This document shows, piece by piece, positions 2,111-9,360 of a stretch of DNA of 64,000 bases. How positions within the stretch are numbered: the first letter of the stretch is position 1; each line of letters opens with the position of its first letter. The translations under genes and the position numbers were made by a program. The notes beneath the pieces were generated by a model. That model ran no database searches, was not told the origin of the DNA, and worked only from the letters and a program-made list of their open reading frames with translations. Source of the DNA: Guillardia theta CCMP2712 (lineage: Eukaryota > Protista > Cryptophyta); assembly GCF_000315625.1 (NCBI RefSeq), contig NW_005434673.1:396270-460269 (forward strand). The letters are read 5' to 3'.

Positions 2111-5068
2111 ATGGCAGCGCTGGCCTTGATTAAGGTGGTGGTTTGTTGGGGACAAATAGCTGTCTGACGAAGTCCGATTCAGGGTTGCATCGATGTCGCC
2201 ATCAACACGAAGAAGGTCTTCTTACAAACTAGGAGGAGAGTTCAAGATAAGATGATCGGCACTCTCGAAACAGGCGGTGGATTTCTTCAAGACGATGGGC
2301 AAGTCGGAGGAAGAGGCGTTCTACTTCTGGCGGATGCTCGACGCCTTGACGGCTCCGCTCGAGCTGGCCATCGCACTGAGGAGGCGAGTTTGGGAGGAAG
2401 GGGAGGAAGGAGAGGTTGAGAGCTGATGAGGGTGGGGAGAAGTGGGGGGGTGAGCACGTGCTTGTCTGGTTTCAACATCGATTTGTTACCTCCCGTGCAA
2501 TTCAGCTCGCTGTTTCGATTCACAGCGAGCGAACTGCGCCAGCTATTGCATCCCCTGCGCTTATTGGGCAGGGATGGTTTGCCACGAAAGTTCATACTGG
2601 GGACTCTATTGGCACCAGACGAAGGGCAATGGGAAGTAAGAGCTGACGTGGCTCTGATGATCGTGCTCTATCGTCTAACAAGAAATGCTTCAATGGAAGA
2701 GATAGCCTGGTACTTCAACTTGACTGTGTCAAAGTGCTCTGCTGCCTTCGATGCCTTGGTGAGGTATCTCATGACATACCACGAGGAACCTGTGCAAGAG
2801 GTATACTGCATGGCTCGTCGCTTTCAGAGCATTGCCGATTACATGGTCGAACTCGGCTCCCCCTTACGATAACCTCCTGGGCTTCGTCGACACCGCGTAC
2901 ACGANNNNNNNNNNNNNNNNNNNNNNNNNNNNNNNNNNNNNNNNNNNNNNNNNNNNNNNNNNNNNNNNNNNNNNNNNNNNNNNNNNNNNNNNNNNNNNNN
3001 NNNNAGTCGAGATCAGGATTTTTGGCGATACTGTTGAAAGCTGAGTTGAACATCAGGATAATGTCTGATGATTCGTTGCTGACTATCGTTTTCTTTCTTC
3101 TTATCCCAGAGCACTGGGACCGTGTACTTCCCTTCTTTGTCTCCGGCGATCTCGTACAGCTCACGAATGCTCTTCGCGTTGTTGACAGTGTCCGGGATGC
3201 AGTACGTGCACGGAAAAGATCCGTGACCGTTCAAGTTCGAGACTGGAGGATCGGAAGGATCTCTGAACATCCACCCGATATGCTCGTCCTAGTCCTCCAA
3301 ACGTCACCACGAGGAGGATGGAGGGATATAAGGTTGGAGGGGAAAGAAAGGTTCCCCAAACACCTGACGATATTTCTGTGCAGACGCCATTCAACGCTGC
3401 ATGACGTGGATGCTGTTGTAGAATTAGCAAGGTACACCATCGCAAGGTGTGAACTGTTGGTGGACCGCGACGGAGAGGTAGGGAGCTCAATCAAACTCGA
3501 TGAAGACGTTGAACGGGGCTGGTCAGGGTCTTCCCGACGACGATTCGTCGGGGGCATGGAAAGAATGGCTCAACGGCAAGAAGGATGGAGTCTCGAGGTT
3601 TCGTCTCTGTGCAGTGATGTATCATAAACGTGTGGGTTCAGACTGCAGATCATGCGTGAGCTGCTACCAAAACTGCAGATGACTCACCAGGCTCTGACCC
3701 TGGCGCTCACTTCGATAAGAATCAAGGTTGTTTGCAGGCCTTGTAAGTGACTGCTGTCCACTGACTGTTTCGTATCTTCAGCATGATAGCGATACTTTGA
3801 AGATCCGGTGATGGGAAATCGCAAAACAGCTCACACGAGTGTGACAAGCTTTCAGCTCCCCCTTCTCGTTCATTCCTCATGCAACCGATGTAGCTGTGGA
3901 GGTTTACCATGACTTTGAATTCGGCAGGGTAAGGGGATTGAGATCAGGGTATAAATGACATTGACTCTACTGGTGGTCAGGTTGAAAGCCACATCATGAT
4001 CGCAATGGGGGAGATCTACAAGTCAACACAAACACCAGCCGCTGCCAGAGGTTCACCCTTTTGAATTGAAACTTCACTGGTGAGATTAGGGACAGGCTCG
4101 AAATCAGCAGCAAGACTCTGGTGCCTTCTCGGAACACACGCGGTCAATCTGCATAGAAGAGAGAATGAGAAAACAAACGCTAGCGGGTCCGTTACCTTGA
4201 GTCCTTTCCAGCAATAAGAACTCCGCAGGTACTACCTGAAATTTCAGCAAATGAAATTCGCGAGCGATCTCGACTCGAGCAAACTGGACGATAGCGGAGT
4301 GAGCGAAGGGGAACCCACGGCGCACGGGTGCAACTTGGATGTGGAAGGTCCAGTTTCGAGGAGCTGAACGATGATGGCAGGGATCTCTCTTTGAGCGAGG
4401 ACCTTTCCTTCGCGCGCAAGTGGATGGATGAGGTTGTGGTGAGTGCGTTGAGCTCATGGACTGATGGGACCGACTTGAAGATCCCTGAGCTCGAGGTCGA
4501 CGAGAGCGACAAGAATCGCCTGGTGAGGACGTAGCTGCTGCCGCCGGCCCTTGCTGACCCTTTGCAGGTCTACAAGCTCGGCCAGGAGTACCTGATCGCG
4601 TTCGAGAGCACTGCCAACATCTCCGCGGAGACGTTCGAAGGTTCCTTGCTTCCGCTCCGATCGCCTTGTAACTTCGTGCCATCAGCTATCATCTGCATCG
4701 GGAAATGCCTGCAGCCCTCCAGCAGGTCCGAGTTCTCTACCGCTGTCTGTGATGTTGCTGACAAGAGCGCAAAGTCGCAAACCGACATGCATAGCCGACC
4801 TGTCGCTGGACGTGCGGCCCCTCCCCCGCTCACCCAAGAGTGTTGACTCGATGGCTGCAGGACAGGAGATGGTGGAAGGCGCAGCTGGAGAAGCAGCTGG
4901 GGCCTTTCTATGAGCAGGAGAGTCACGAGGATGTCAACAGCATAATCAGGTGGGCGTCAGTTGTAACATTTGAAGTGTTGAACAAAGTTTGCACAGTCCC
5001 ATCAGGGAACAGCTGAGAAAAACGACATTAAACGATTGAGACTTAGAGAGCAGCTGGAAGTCACGTAG
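2111..5068 (+). CDS. Multi-exon hypothetical protein spanning the first assembly gap
   Basis: Splice-bounded exon-like segments: MAALALIK|, AVDFFKTMGKSEEEAFYFWRMLDALTAPLELAIALRR|, GLPDDDSSGAWKEWLNGKK, IMRELLPKLQMTHQALTLALTSIRIK, YYLKFQQMKF, VYKLGQEYLIAFESTANISAETFE. Joining them across the gap is inferred. Confidence 0.45.
2451..2904 (+). repeat. Partial second copy of the Harbinger-like gene (matches 13822-14274) ending at the N gap
   Basis: Matches 13822 onward except for one extra C in a C run near 2860, which frameshifts LGSPYDN to LGSPLR*. Confidence 0.9.
2905..3004. other. Assembly gap (100 N)
   Basis: Run of N. Confidence 1.
3005..3288 (-). pseudogene. Isolated exon of a glutathionyl-hydroquinone reductase (GHR/ECM4/YqjG-type GST), frameshifted and probably misplaced by assembly
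   Basis: DEHIGWMFRD...PDTVNNAKSIRELYEIAGDKEGKYTVPVLWDKKK/KTIVSNESSDIILMFNSAFNSIAKNPDLD matches GHR consensus motifs. There is a +1 base in an A-rich run near 3095 and no upstream CPW exon is visible. Confidence 0.7.
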
Positions 5069-5184
5069 AAGAGTCGAGCGGGGGGTTGTGGTTGAGGTAG
5101 GGGACAAACTTGTCAGACTGGCCAAGGTTTTGTGATGCAGGACGTATCAGTGTGGCACTAACCACGATTTAGAATTCTCTTCTT

Positions 5185-8100
5185 TCAGTTTGGAATCACA
5201 AAGTTGCAAATCTTGCCAGGGACGAAAATCTTCTTCTTGATTTCCTTACCCTAGTGAAGAAATTTCAAACCCAATGAACGAGCAGGGAATTCTCACCTCA
5301 ATCCACTTCTGGACATTCTCGTTCTGCTCAATAAGGGCGATGGCAGCAGCTTGGTCGGCATCAGCTGGGACCTGGACGGCAAGGTCTTGTCAGCTGAGGA
5401 TGGTCAGGCGGCTAGCTAGCAAGTGACTGACCTCGACGGTTCCCTTCAGCTTCCCGTTGATCTGTAGATTTCATGAGGAGGGAAGCAGGAAGGCAAGCAA
5501 GGAGGGACAAGAGGGGCAGGGGAGGGGAGGAGGGACGAGAGGAGCAGGAGAGGGAAGGAGAAGGAGGGAGGGGAGGGGCCCACCTGCACGGCGATATTTA
5601 AAGCATCCTCGACCAAATACTTCTCATTGAACTCAGGCCAAGGGCTAAAAAGTAGCAGTGAGTTGGCAGGAAGAGTAGAGCGATGAGGTTTGCAGTAAGA
5701 CGAGCTGCAGCTGCAGCAGTAGCAGAAGGAGGCCTTGTCATACCTGTTAGACACTGAGGGTTTCTGGCCCAACCTCTCCCAAAGCTCTTCAGCGATGTGA
5801 GGAGCGTAGGGATTGAGCAGTTGGACGAAGGGGATCGCGATGCTCCTGGGGATCGACTTCCTGCCATCATCTCATCAACTCCCTCCTCCCTCCTCCCTCC
5901 TCCTCCTCCTCCTCCCTCCTCGCACCACTTGTAAGCCGCGTTGACAAACTCCATCATGGCAGCGATCGCCGTGTTGAAGCTAAGCTTCTCTGTGTCCTGA
6001 GTGACGCGCTTGATGGTGGTGTGGAGCACCTGGGAGGACGAGGGTGAGTCTGCCTCCCCGCTTGCTCAAGGAGTCACCTTGAGATGCTCCTTCCCAGGCT
6101 CCTCGTCAGTCAGCGGAATGTTGTCCTCCGTGATGAGCCTCCAGGCACGGTTGAGGAAGCGGTACACGCCCTCCACCCCGTTGGTGTTCCAGGGCTTCAC
6201 CTGCTCCAGCGGGCCCATGAACATGAGGTAGAGACGGAGGGAGTCTGCTCCGACGTTGGAGATGACGTCATCAGGGTTGACCACGTTGCCCCTGCTCTTG
6301 GACATCTTGACAGCCCGGCTGAGGACGCGGATCTCGGGCTGGTCCTTGAGGACAAAAGATTCTCCCTTCTTGATCAGCTGGCTCTCGTCGACACTGCGAG
6401 CCTCCATCTTCGCTCGTGTCTTCTTGTGCTCAGGCCCCTGCTCCCCATCCTCGTTCACTTCCTTAGCAGAGACAGCCTTGTCCGTCCCTGCCTCGTAGAA
6501 CACCGTGTGCTCGATGGGGCCGAGGATCAGCCCCTGGTTCACCAGTCGCTGGAAGGGCTCCTTAGTGTGTACGACCCCGCAGTCGTAGAGGACCTTGTGC
6601 CAGAACCTGGCGTACAGCAGATGAAGCACGGCATGCTCGGCCCCTCCGAGGTACAGGTCAACAGGCATCCAGTACTTCTCCAAGGCCGGGTCGATGGGAG
6701 CACCAGGGTTCTCAGGATCGAGGAAGCGGAGGTAGTACCAGCAGGAGCCGGCCCACTGCGGCATCGTATTGGTCTCCCTCCGCACCTTCCTCCCGTCCGG
6801 CAACTGGTAGTTCACCCAGCTGTCGATGGTGGACAGAGGTCCCTCCGTGGTACCGCTGGGTTGGTAGGACTCGACGTCAGGGAGAGTGACCGGGAGCTCC
6901 GACTCGGGGAGGGGATGGGGGGCGCCGTCCTCGGTAAAGACGATGGGAAAGGGCTCCCCCCAGTACCTCTGACGAGAGAAGAGCCAGTCTCGCAGCTTGT
7001 AGTTCACCTTCCCCTGGCCTAGAGACTTCTGCTCCAGGTAGGCGATCGTCTTCGCCTTTGCCTCATCCACCTTGAGGCCGTTGATGTCCAGCTCAGCGCT
7101 AGCTGAGTTGATCAGCACGCCGTCATCCGTGTACGCTTTGGCCTGCACGTCCTCACCACCCTGGACCACCTCCTTGATGGGAAGGCCGAACTTGGTAGCG
7201 AACTCGTGATCGCGTTCATCGTGCGCTGGAACCGCCATGATCGCTCCTGTTCCGTAAGAGCCCAGGACGTAGTCTGCGACCCAGATCGGGACCTCCTCCT
7301 TGGTCAGCGGGTTGATTGCGTACCCCCCGGTGAAAAGTCCAGTCTTGTCTTTCTGCAGCTCTGTCCTCTCCAGGTCGCTCTTCTGCGAGGCCTTCAGCAC
7401 GTACTCCTTTACGGCGTCTCGTTGCTCTGGGGAAGTGACCTTGTCCAGGAGCGGGTGCTCCGGAGCCAGCACGAGGTACGTTGCTCCGAACAGAGTGTCC
7501 GGCCTAGTCGTGAAGACGACAACCTCCTCTGCCCCGTTGCTCTTCTGAGCCCTTGGATCAGAGCTGTAGCGCGGGGACTTCTTCGCTGGCTTCACCAGAA
7601 CTTTCCTCCCTCCCATCTCATACTCCCCGCAAGCCTTCTGCGCATCTTCCTCGTTCATGAACTCGACGAACCCGTACCCCTTGGACCTCTGGGTGTCCCT
7701 GTCGCGCAAGACTCTCGCCGACTTGATGGGACCAACCTTGCCCAGCTCCCTCTCAAGATCCTCCTCAGAGTAAGCCCAAGGGATGCCACCGACGAAGACT
7801 TTCTGATGCTCCACCTCCTCAGTCCCTCCTGTAGCAGCCCCGGACGACTTGACCTTGAAGGAGACCTCGGCTCCTTGGCTCTTCCCGATCCAGTTCCTCT
7901 GCATCTCCTTGACTGACTCTGGCCAATCAAGCTCTTCGAGGTCTTCGAGGAGCCTGTCGGCATAGGCAGTGATCTTCAACATCCACTGCTTGAGGTTCTT
8001 CTTGAACACAGGGTGTCCCCCTCTCTCGCTCTTTCCATCGATCACTTCCTCGTTCGCCAGCACGGTCCCGAGAGCAGGGCACCAGTTCACGGGGACTTCT

Positions 8101-8873
8101 GCCTGATACGCAAGTCCCTTCTCATACAGCTTGAGGAAGATCCACTGGGTCCACTTGTAGTACTGCTCGTCCGTGGTAGAGACCTCTCGCTTCCAGTCGT
8201 AGCTGAACCCAAGGCTCTGCAGCTGCTCCCTGAACCTGTCGATGTTCTTCTTGGTAGTGACGCTGGGATGTGTCCCTGTCTGAATGGCGTACTGCTCCGC
8301 AGGCAACCCAAACGCATCCCATCCCATAGGGTGCATGACGTTGTAATCGTTCATCTTCTTGTAGCGAGAGAGGATGTCGGTCGCCGTGTACCCCTCCGGA
8401 TGCCCAACGTGGAGACCCGCGCCAGAAGGGTAGGGGAACATGTCGAGAACGTAGTACTTGGGCTTCGACATGTCGACCTTCTCTGGCGTCCTGAAGGTGT
8501 CTTGCTCCTTCCAGAACCCCTGCCACTTGCGCTCGATCTCTTGGAAGGGGTAAGCGGAGCTCGTGGAACTTTCCTTCTCCGCCATCTCCACGGATCCACC
8601 ACTCATCATGACAGCATGACGCTGATAGATCGGGCTCCTCCTGAGGGGCAAGGCCGTCCTCATCGTTCCCTTGCATGTCCACGACGCTCTCCCAGTTCTT
8701 ACACTATTTCCAGTGTGCAATTGCGACACAAAACCAGGCAGCTTCCTCGGGTGCAGCGCAGACAGACTGTGCATGAGATGGTCCTGCATGGAAGGGGAGG
8801 GCATCTTGAAGCAGCTGGCAAAGCTCAGCCCCACCGCCGACATGACGCAAGGAAGCGCTCCTAACCCCCGCAT
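5185..8873 (-). CDS. leuS: Bacterial-type leucyl-tRNA synthetase, plastid-targeted, with an inserted RRM domain
   Basis: [18 protein letters not shown] (HIGH), [17 protein letters not shown] and [12 protein letters not shown] (CP1), [37 protein letters not shown] 2.8-kb first exon is followed by six short GT-AG introns leading to [23 protein letters not shown] and [13 protein letters not shown]. The N-terminus is signal peptide plus ASC-F plus a Ser/Arg-rich transit-like peptide. Confidence 0.97.
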
Positions 8874-8949
8874 TGGCGGCCGCCAGACACACTACCAAGA
8901 CCACTGGCCTTCCCTCGTCCCCGCTATGACCAGCGCTCTAAGCCTGGCA

Positions 8950-9360
8950 GCTTGCCCGCCCGGGTGACACATCCGATCCGGGCGGCGATCGGATTGATCT
9001 CGTAGCGGCCCTTCAAACTGATTCAAGTCCAACTCGGACCATAGAGTCACTACTGCCACTCAGACCAATGAGAGTCCACAACGCCGAGCAGATCTTCCAT
9101 AACTTACTGTGACGGGAGTTTACTGTAGACTCTGAGTCAAGAATTTCATACTACTGTTGCCCTCTGCTCGTTTCTCGCCTACTGACCCCTCTAAAGGGGT
9201 TCCCAACCTTGGGAGGCCGGCCCTTGTTTCCTAGAGGCCCCGCCGACCTGGTTGCTTCCGTTTTAGATGCCCCGGGGGGGGCCCGGCCCCCGCGCCTGTG
9301 TTGGCCACTCGGAGCCGGGAGCCCGGCCGGGGGCCCTCATCCCCGCGGGCTCCTGGGCCT
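8950..9360. promoter_or_regulatory. CCGG-rich, GATCGGA-containing intergenic patch between divergent genes (putative bidirectional promoter)
   Basis: cccgggggggg, ggcccggcccc, gcccggccggggg, atccgatccgggcggcgatcggat, agagtcac. Confidence 0.4.

Follow-up and report, generated by a model that had tools for sequence, protein, structure and literature searches.

A 64,000-nucleotide stretch of the genome of the cryptophyte Guillardia theta CCMP2712 (assembly GCF_000315625.1, contig NW_005434673.1, positions 396,270 to 460,269; hereafter the window) raises the question of what a complete RNA recognition motif (RRM) is doing inside the proofreading domain of an organellar leucyl-tRNA synthetase (LeuRS). 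The minus-strand open reading frame (ORF) at window positions 6066..8873 translates into 935 residues of a bacterial-type LeuRS, and an initial annotation, made from the sequence alone, had described a complete, in-frame RRM of about 105 residues in the connective peptide 1 (CP1) region of this enzyme. Our analysis confirms that description, with the sequence motifs lying where they had been reported, and sets the length of the insert at 108 amino acids (aa 342–449, window positions 7527–7850), which lie between the first and second editing-domain strands.

The Pfam profile RRM_1 (PF00076) matches aa 359–416 of the ORF (positions 7626–7799) with an E value of 4.7e-18 and a score of 65.3 bits against a cut-off of 20.7, which is far beyond chance. 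As anticipated, this match is nested between those of the catalytic profile tRNA-synt_1 (aa 117–333, E value 2.4e-43) and the editing-domain profile tRNA-synt_1_2 (PF13603; aa 447–613, E value 5.8e-62). From the N-terminal to the C-terminal side of the protein, the insert and its borders comprise the following features.

7851..7898, minus strand: last part of the CP core and the editing domain's first beta-strand, aa 326–341 (motif search, alignment, AlphaFold2)
7806..7850, minus strand: N-side linker, aa 342–356, rich in Gly, Ser and Ala and variable between species, with low model confidence at aa 345–353 (alignment, AlphaFold2)
7575..7805, minus strand: RRM fold, aa 357–433, of order beta1-alpha1-beta2-beta3-alpha2-beta4 (Pfam, PDB matches, AlphaFold2, substitution rates)
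7779..7802, minus strand: RNP2 motif KVFVGGIP, aa 358–365, with aromatic residue F360 (motif search, insert alignment)
7659..7682, minus strand: RNP1 motif KGYGFVEF, aa 398–405, with aromatic residues Y400 and F402 (motif search, insert alignment)
7584..7613, minus strand: 10-residue motif between RNP1 and the C-side linker, aa 421–430 (motif search)
7527..7583, minus strand: basic C-terminal extension (clade consensus AKRS.RYAA.P) and C-side linker, aa 431–449 (insert alignment, AlphaFold2)
7476..7526, minus strand: second strand of the editing-domain hairpin and Thr-rich editing motif, aa 450–466 (motif search, alignment)

An AlphaFold2 model based on a 96-sequence alignment (mean predicted local distance difference test (pLDDT) score of 83.1; predicted template modelling score (pTM) of 0.72) is consistent with this architecture. 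In the numbering of P0001, the full-length product to which 70 is added to obtain ORF numbering, the predicted strands (E) and helices (H) of the RRM are E284-292, H300-307, E313-320, E327-335, H338-344 and E353-361, with block-mean pLDDT values of roughly 67–88. Two stretches with values below 50, P0001 residues 275–283 and 363–377 (ORF aa 345–353 and 433–447), flank the domain, and the basic C-terminal extension is conserved despite its low model confidence. The editing-domain strands that border the insert, ORF aa 331–341 (P0001 residues 261–271) and aa 450–455, form a simple hairpin in LeuRS proteins that lack the RRM. Indeed, no solved LeuRS among the Foldseek matches of the model carries a domain at this site, whereas the overall fold compares well with the LeuRS–tRNA complexes 2bte and 4aq7 from Thermus thermophilus and Escherichia coli, with target-normalized TM-scores (TMt) of 0.83–0.86.

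The initial annotation had placed the insert at the start of CP1. In Neisseria gonorrhoeae LeuRS, the ‘CP1 hairpin’ is a zinc-knuckle element (residues 147–194), and the editing domain, which spans residues 225–427, begins right after the NW223IG motif (PMC9424281). Because the name CP1 hairpin denotes the zinc-knuckle element in LeuRS papers, the RRM is better assigned to the initial hairpin of the editing domain itself; thus the original position holds for that beta-hairpin and not for the element that bears the CP1 name. The editing domain turns by about 29 degrees during the LeuRS cycle, accompanying the 3′ end of the tRNA (PMC9424281), so the module would be mounted on a mobile part of the enzyme.

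By sequence, the RRM appears generic. It matches 163 RRM chains in the PDB at E values of 1e-5 or lower (best E value 6e-26), including those of PABP, Hrp1, nucleolin, hnRNP A1/A2/D-like proteins, ELAV/Hu proteins, PUF60, chloroplast cS22 and CIRBP.

The enzyme that surrounds the insert retains the motifs needed for both of its activities, as the initial annotation had also reported. Its coding region and class I signatures are located as follows.

5188..8873, minus strand: organellar bacterial-type LeuRS coding region (G. theta leuRS2 class), seven exons (tblastn of the 1,012-aa P0001 and spliced cDNA contigs)
8400..8411, minus strand: HVGH class I signature (HIGH), aa 155–158 (motif search)
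6294..6308, minus strand: KMSKS class I signature, aa 856–860 (motif search)

The editing motifs TTRPDT (aa 455–460) and GTG...HDERD (about aa 541–555) likewise occupy alignment columns that are invariant or nearly so. P0001, which was recovered by a search of a protein cluster database, is a 1,012-aa product of a JGI contig that contains the RRM; an anticodon-binding domain (PF08264) is precomputed for it, and the 3′ exons that complete this product map onto the window. Because the synthetic and editing motifs are intact, the LeuRS body is predicted to be a working enzyme that carries an extra module.

The RRM in spliced transcripts

The NCBI reference protein for the G. theta CCMP2712 leucyl-tRNA synthetase (P0010) is 888 aa long and 100% identical to our translation where the two align, yet it lacks the RRM. 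Alignment reveals that P0010 passes directly from ...FKVKS to AQKSNG..., such that its gene model removes a 294-nucleotide piece as an intron. The start of the P0010 model also lies downstream of the targeting extension described below. If the reference model were correct, the RRM would be absent from the protein, either as an unspliced intron in our reading or as a chimera produced by assembly or gene modelling. Transcript data for the region define the following features.

6075..8893, minus strand: first exon in cDNA, bounded by the 5′ terminus of the longest contig and the first splice donor (contigs X1, X2 and X7, with 0 gaps and 0 differences)
6027..6074, minus strand: intron 1, verified, 48 nucleotides, GT..AG (contig joints in X1, X2 and X7, and splice-site check)
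5862–5928, 5645–5743, 5462–5583, 5369–5428 and 5250–5295, minus strand: other verified introns (contig joints or pieces, and splice-site check), the ends of 5862–5928 and 5462–5583 being approximate owing to repeats that were skipped in the alignment
7552..7845, minus strand: 294-nucleotide piece (98 codons) that is excised as an intron in the P0010 model (alignment; GT..AG on a one-base shift)

The RNA data covering window positions 5000–9300 comprise one raw-read run (X19, 2 reads) and Logan contigs of three runs (X1, X2 and X7), each from a different study. The contigs of all three runs skip the introns at 6027–6074, 5645–5743 and 5369–5428, the joint across 5250–5295 is present in X1 and X7 only, and two further contig gaps fall at about 5862–5928 and 5462–5583. 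The skipped introns read CT..AC on the plus strand and therefore GT..AG on the strand of the gene. Because these small 3′ introns are missing, the contigs represent spliced cDNA. Each contig nevertheless contains an unbroken piece, free of differences, that runs from position 6075 to 8893, 8857 or 8867 and thus across the entire RRM. This first exon includes the start codon, targeting region, catalytic core, RRM insert, editing domain and KMSKS signature, and its continuity bears out the initial view that the module lies within a single uninterrupted exon and is not the product of a gene-model fusion.

Contigs from the three studies show six 3′ introns removed, and none contains a splice joint across positions 7552–7845. 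The supposed intron also fails to resemble the verified ones, which are 46–122 nucleotides in length, such that 294 nucleotides would be 2.4–6 times longer. Its GC content of 0.59 equals that of the exon, and its donor, TC|GTCCGG, differs from the verified donors GTATGA, GTGGGC, GTGAGA, GTGACT and GTCAGT. These data demonstrate that the main G. theta mRNA encodes the RRM and that positions 7552–7845 are not an intron. P0010, as found in NCBI and UniProt, is a mis-model in which the codons of the RRM have been removed as a false intron, and it may stem from homology-guided gene prediction. Surveys of domain architecture built on the NCBI/UniProt model for G. theta will miss the RRM, and the model needs correction.

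The notion that the segment is an artefact absent from the protein draws on the RRM-less NCBI protein and is vanishingly improbable: spliced cDNA from three studies contains the segment, it is in frame and yields a strong domain match, and eight other protein clusters, which include transcript contigs, keep it in frame under purifying selection. On the basis of cDNA continuity and of intron size and context, we reject both the artefact and the constitutive-intron readings.

A subtler version of the same idea is that the 294-nucleotide piece is an optional exitron, spliced from a minority of transcripts or under certain conditions to yield LeuRS with and without the RRM, possibly one form per compartment. 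The piece does have GT..AG boundaries and a length that is a multiple of three, and assembled contigs drop rare variants. We nonetheless consider this highly improbable, because no joint across the piece is observed in the three studies, its donor and length are unlike those of the verified introns, and its excision would cut within the conserved C-terminal extension.

Distribution, origin and selection

We scored residues 300–500 of the protein against 5.8 billion protein clusters. Among the matches listed, eight further clusters at 90% identity combine PF00076, PF13603 and PF00133 and are 56–63% identical to the G. theta protein over these residues. With the cluster of P0001, the nine clusters hold 77 members, all from JGI, ENA or Logan environmental and transcriptome assemblies, and so the architecture appears to be rare in databases. 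Some carriers are transcript-like contigs that retain the insert within one unbroken, full-length ORF extending through the anticodon-binding domain, namely L001 (1,093 aa on 3,381 nucleotides) and L011. Others are genomic, among them L002, a contig of 11.9 kb, for which we found no gene neighbours shared with the window. The RRM-LeuRS gene on L002 is neighboured by a BCCIP gene.

When the whole length of the protein was searched against the same database, the RRM carriers were the nearest relatives of the G. theta enzyme among the matches listed (69–76% identity). None of the remaining listed LeuRS matches (56–62% identity) has an RRM, and these include bacterial enzymes from Kiritimatiellae, Verrucomicrobia, Lentisphaerae, Rhodothermales and Calditrichaeota as well as organellar enzymes from green algae, liverworts, ferns and two EukProt entries. 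Thus, among the listed matches a single small clade holds every LeuRS with the insert, in keeping with the initial annotation, which had known of no RRM appended to a LeuRS.

Two other searches bear on distribution only weakly. The top 150 HMMER matches of the 108-aa insert in 1.84 billion cluster representatives are all multi-RRM proteins and include no LeuRS, not even the insert’s own parent; this outcome is uninformative on distribution, as it likely reflects LeuRS clusters at 50% identity having RRM-less representatives. A feature search of the ESM Atlas returned ordinary LeuRS clusters and no RRM-LeuRS cluster with at least 50 members, which is a weak negative.

A maximum-likelihood tree of 44 LeuRS sequences, built by a quick search from columns that are at least half filled (which excludes the insert) and assessed by the Shimodaira–Hasegawa-like approximate likelihood ratio test (SH-aLRT) alone, groups all 11 RRM carriers in one clade (support 100), with G. 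theta as sister to the other ten. This clade nests within the group of eukaryotic organellar LeuRS proteins (support 94). Because the carriers form a single clade inside organellar enzymes that lack the RRM, the tree indicates that the module was gained once, in an ancestor of G. theta and its relatives. The environmental carriers are probably cryptophytes, as suggested by their sister position to G. theta and by their signal-peptide-like N termini. In the same tree, the eukaryotic organellar clade, comprising the cryptophyte-like sequences, green algae, land plants and two EukProt entries, groups, among the sequences sampled, with bacteria of the PVC and FCB types (Kiritimatiellae, Verrucomicrobia and Rhodothermales); the tree contains no Cyanobacteria or alphaproteobacteria, none of which ranked with the top matches, and we draw no conclusion from it about the origin of the enzyme.

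The closest other RRM in the G. theta genome is just 39–43% identical to the insert, which suggests that the insertion is old and that its donor is no longer recognizable. The same value rules out a G. theta paralogue as the source of the insert by recent exon shuffling.

Also consistent with retention of RNA-binding capacity is the pattern of conservation among 22 distinct insert sequences. The RNP2 stretch KVFVGG.PW is invariant in all 22, the RNP1 stretch SKG[YF]GFV.F is conserved in every one with a single Y-to-F change, and the C-terminal extension AKRS.RYAA.P is invariant or nearly so, whereas the Gly/Ala/Ser linkers vary freely. The ratio of non-synonymous to synonymous substitution rates (dN/dS; Nei–Gojobori method, sequence pairs whose synonymous sites are unsaturated, at dS of 0.44–1.1) is 0.24–0.33 for the RRM versus 0.02–0.05 for the flanking enzyme. 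These values indicate that the RRM is under purifying selection that is looser than that acting on the catalytic body.

This evidence also addresses whether the RRM is a tolerated passenger with little or no function, delivered by ancient exon shuffling or retro-insertion into a permissive surface loop. The loop does seem permissive. A bacterial LeuRS (P0110; 926 aa, ENA, on a 2.1-Mb contig), sister to a Methylacidiphilales LeuRS in the tree, has an insert of about 80 residues in the same editing-domain loop (alignment columns ~416–530), which suggests that extra sequence is tolerated there. However, that insert is of low complexity, has no Pfam match and is of independent origin. A second insert lies further along the editing domain of P0110. 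That the RRM evolves much faster than the remaining enzyme would likewise suit a passenger, but its dN/dS value is not close to 1, its RNP1, RNP2 and C-terminal extension are invariant where synonymous sites are saturated, and no loss of the insert is seen among the clade members found. We therefore judge a passive role to be very unlikely.

Possible roles of the nested RRM

The role that we tentatively favour, at a likelihood approaching but not reaching an even chance, is that of an auxiliary RNA anchor, with the RRM acting in cis on tRNA-Leu. Under this proposal, the domain would serve as a tethered module for binding single-stranded RNA, mounted on the mobile editing domain, and would add affinity for tRNA-Leu by capturing the tRNA. 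Alternatively, it might hold tRNA-Leu as the 3′ end travels back and forth between the sites of synthesis and editing. Such extra affinity could be useful to one enzyme that serves the tRNA-Leu sets of two organelles, a situation that probably applies here (see below). Appended or terminal RNA-binding domains are known to raise tRNA affinity in other eukaryotic aminoacyl-tRNA synthetases (aaRSs).

Several considerations weigh against a tRNA-Leu anchor. RRMs usually bind single-stranded RNA, and most of a tRNA is structured. Plant and green algal orthologues serve two organelles without an RRM, so the module is no general requirement for this task. The RRM evolves 5–10 times faster than the body of the enzyme, a difference compatible with an accessory role that need not be specific to tRNA, and the flexible linkers leave the placement of the domain relative to the path of the tRNA unfixed. 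A minor isoform without the RRM could also go unseen, since assembled contigs lose rare variants.

The same equipment might instead serve a second organellar client. Here the RRM would bind mRNAs, precursors of tRNA or rRNA, or introns, and like chloroplast RRM proteins it could stabilize these RNAs, act as their chaperone or link leucine charging with translation. The intact RNP1 and RNP2 aromatics and the conserved basic C-terminal extension are typical for binding single-stranded RNA, and the PDB matches include cS22/PSRP2 (E values 6e-15 and 1.6e-14) along with mRNA binders of the hnRNP, PABP and ELAV types. Furthermore, the long linkers, if as flexible as modelled, would let the RRM reach RNA outside the active sites. 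Nothing points to a specific target, however, and the cS22 matches are no better than those to many unrelated RRMs. In cryptophyte plastids the introns belong to group II and are patchily distributed; several encode maturase-type ORFs of their own, and the psbN intron, though common, is missing from G. theta (PMC5534331). The insert, in contrast, occurs in all members of the clade. The initial annotation had named intron binding among the possible roles and had noted that CP1 of yeast mitochondrial LeuRS contributes to group I intron splicing; a role in group I intron splicing finds no support in the cryptophyte plastid data, in which the introns are of group II (PMC5534331).

On balance, we regard binding to a second client as the leading alternative, possible but doubtful, and assign the same limited likelihood to a fuller version in which a function on non-tRNA RNA couples leucine charging to organellar RNA stability or translation, perhaps switched by rare exitron splicing. 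If that were true, this LeuRS would be the first synthetase to gain regulatory RNA binding through an RRM nested in its proofreading domain.

Some RRMs mediate protein contacts, and the domain could instead be a docking module used mainly for association with proteins or ribosomes rather than for binding free RNA; it might, for instance, recruit the synthetase to organellar ribosomes or to a complex. The similarity to a ribosome-bound plastid RRM protein fits such a role, and the tethered, exposed placement of the domain in the model would suit it. We consider this unlikely because protein-binding RRMs usually lose the RNP aromatics, which are strictly conserved here.

Comparison with known systems places the proposed tRNA-Leu anchor in context. 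The G. theta enzyme shares 56–62% identity over the aligned body with bacterial and eukaryotic organellar LeuRS proteins such as those of E. coli, T. thermophilus, plants and green algae, and it has the same order of domains (HIGH, CP core, editing, leucine-specific, KMSKS, anticodon-binding and C-terminal). In those enzymes, in contrast, a short turn joins the first two editing strands, and no folded domain is present. Synthetases with EMAPII/Trbp111-like domains, Lys-rich N-terminal extensions or WHEP domains resemble the G. theta enzyme in carrying a generic RNA-binding module in cis, and they offer the likely analogy for its function, whether through added tRNA affinity or through new RNA clients. 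Those modules are not RRMs and sit at the termini of their enzymes, whereas the RRM of G. theta LeuRS is nested inside the editing domain. To our knowledge, domains added to aaRSs are almost always terminal.

Yeast mitochondrial LeuRS (NAM2) and Neurospora TyrRS (CYT-18) are splicing cofactors for group I introns, NAM2 acting via its CP1 region, and both work through their own surfaces or idiosyncratic insertions and not through an RRM. They offer a precedent for organellar synthetases with a second RNA client, although their targets are group I introns and those of cryptophyte plastids belong to group II. Free-standing plastid proteins such as the chloroplast ribonucleoproteins (cpRNPs) and cS22/PSRP2 resemble the insert in being canonical RRM_1 domains that occur in plastids. 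However, they stand alone as proteins, often containing two RRMs, and they match the insert no more closely than nuclear hnRNP, PABP and ELAV proteins do, which reveals no specific kinship.

Searches of about 8.4 million full texts for LeuRS together with RNA recognition motif returned unrelated co-mentions alone, and no text that combines an aaRS, an appended domain and an RRM was found. The presence of an RRM in a LeuRS editing domain is therefore apparently undescribed, even though the enzyme and the insert are each of a known type. Added domains are a classic route by which aaRSs acquire new functions. Here the enzyme is an essential one, and the canonical RRM nested in its mobile editing domain appears to be retained under selection, while RRM-less orthologues provide natural controls. 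The system is thus suited to asking how an extra RNA-binding module alters tRNA capture, proofreading or organellar moonlighting.

Targeting and neighbouring observations

Whether the enzyme serves one organelle or two bears directly on the proposed benefit of a tRNA-Leu anchor. The relevant part of the protein is its N terminus.

8574..8873, minus strand: N-terminal extension, approximately aa 1–100 (translation; similar extensions in homologues)

In the translation, a hydrophobic segment resembling a signal peptide opens the ORF, with F coming next (..SFASC|FKMP..). Candidate starts are Met1, at position 8873, and Met71 (codon at 8661–8663), after which comes an Arg-rich stretch. P0001 begins at Met71, and a Met at or near this position is also found in the homologues P0005, P0008 and P0009. 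Met71 is a possible second start for mitochondrial import, which fits dual targeting by alternative initiation.

A profile scan of the whole 87-Mb assembly yields one strong PF13603 locus, which is this gene. A weak second match was ruled out as a LeuRS because it belongs to a eukaryote-type ValRS. By this measure, the gene is the only one for a bacterial-type LeuRS in the genome. Three G. theta LeuRS genes have been described, of which leuRS1 is cytosolic, leuRS2 is predicted to be ‘Plastid/mito’ and leuRS3 is periplastidal (Gile et al. 2015, PMC4494062); neither of the terms RRM and insertion appears in that paper. The gene in the window probably corresponds to leuRS2 (accession KP998854), because it is the sole bacterial-type gene. 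The enzyme is thus probably dual-targeted to the plastid and the mitochondrion. The plastid assignment of the initial annotation agrees with the published prediction, but targeting to the plastid alone does not.

Two further observations concern neighbouring and related genes. The X1 contig that contains the LeuRS mRNA extends 1,441 nucleotides past window position 5000 (record positions 1–1441; window positions ~3559–5249). Because the contig runs on in this way, the 3′ end of the LeuRS transcript seems to overlap or abut a neighbouring transcript, near the ORFs at 4104–4682 (minus strand) and 2734–3627 (plus strand). Elsewhere in the genome, the N-terminal part of a eukaryote-type ValRS, PPPNVTGTLHIGHAL, is encoded at L004:4–1743 (plus strand; G000:C139, ~189334–191073) and matches tRNA-synt_1 with an E value of 3.4e-67. 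In this open frame of 579 aa, a PDZ domain (PF00595, aa 28–84, E value 5.5e-8) and a Lys-rich linker lie upstream of the ValRS sequence, and the genomic frame can be read as a possible PDZ–ValRS fusion.

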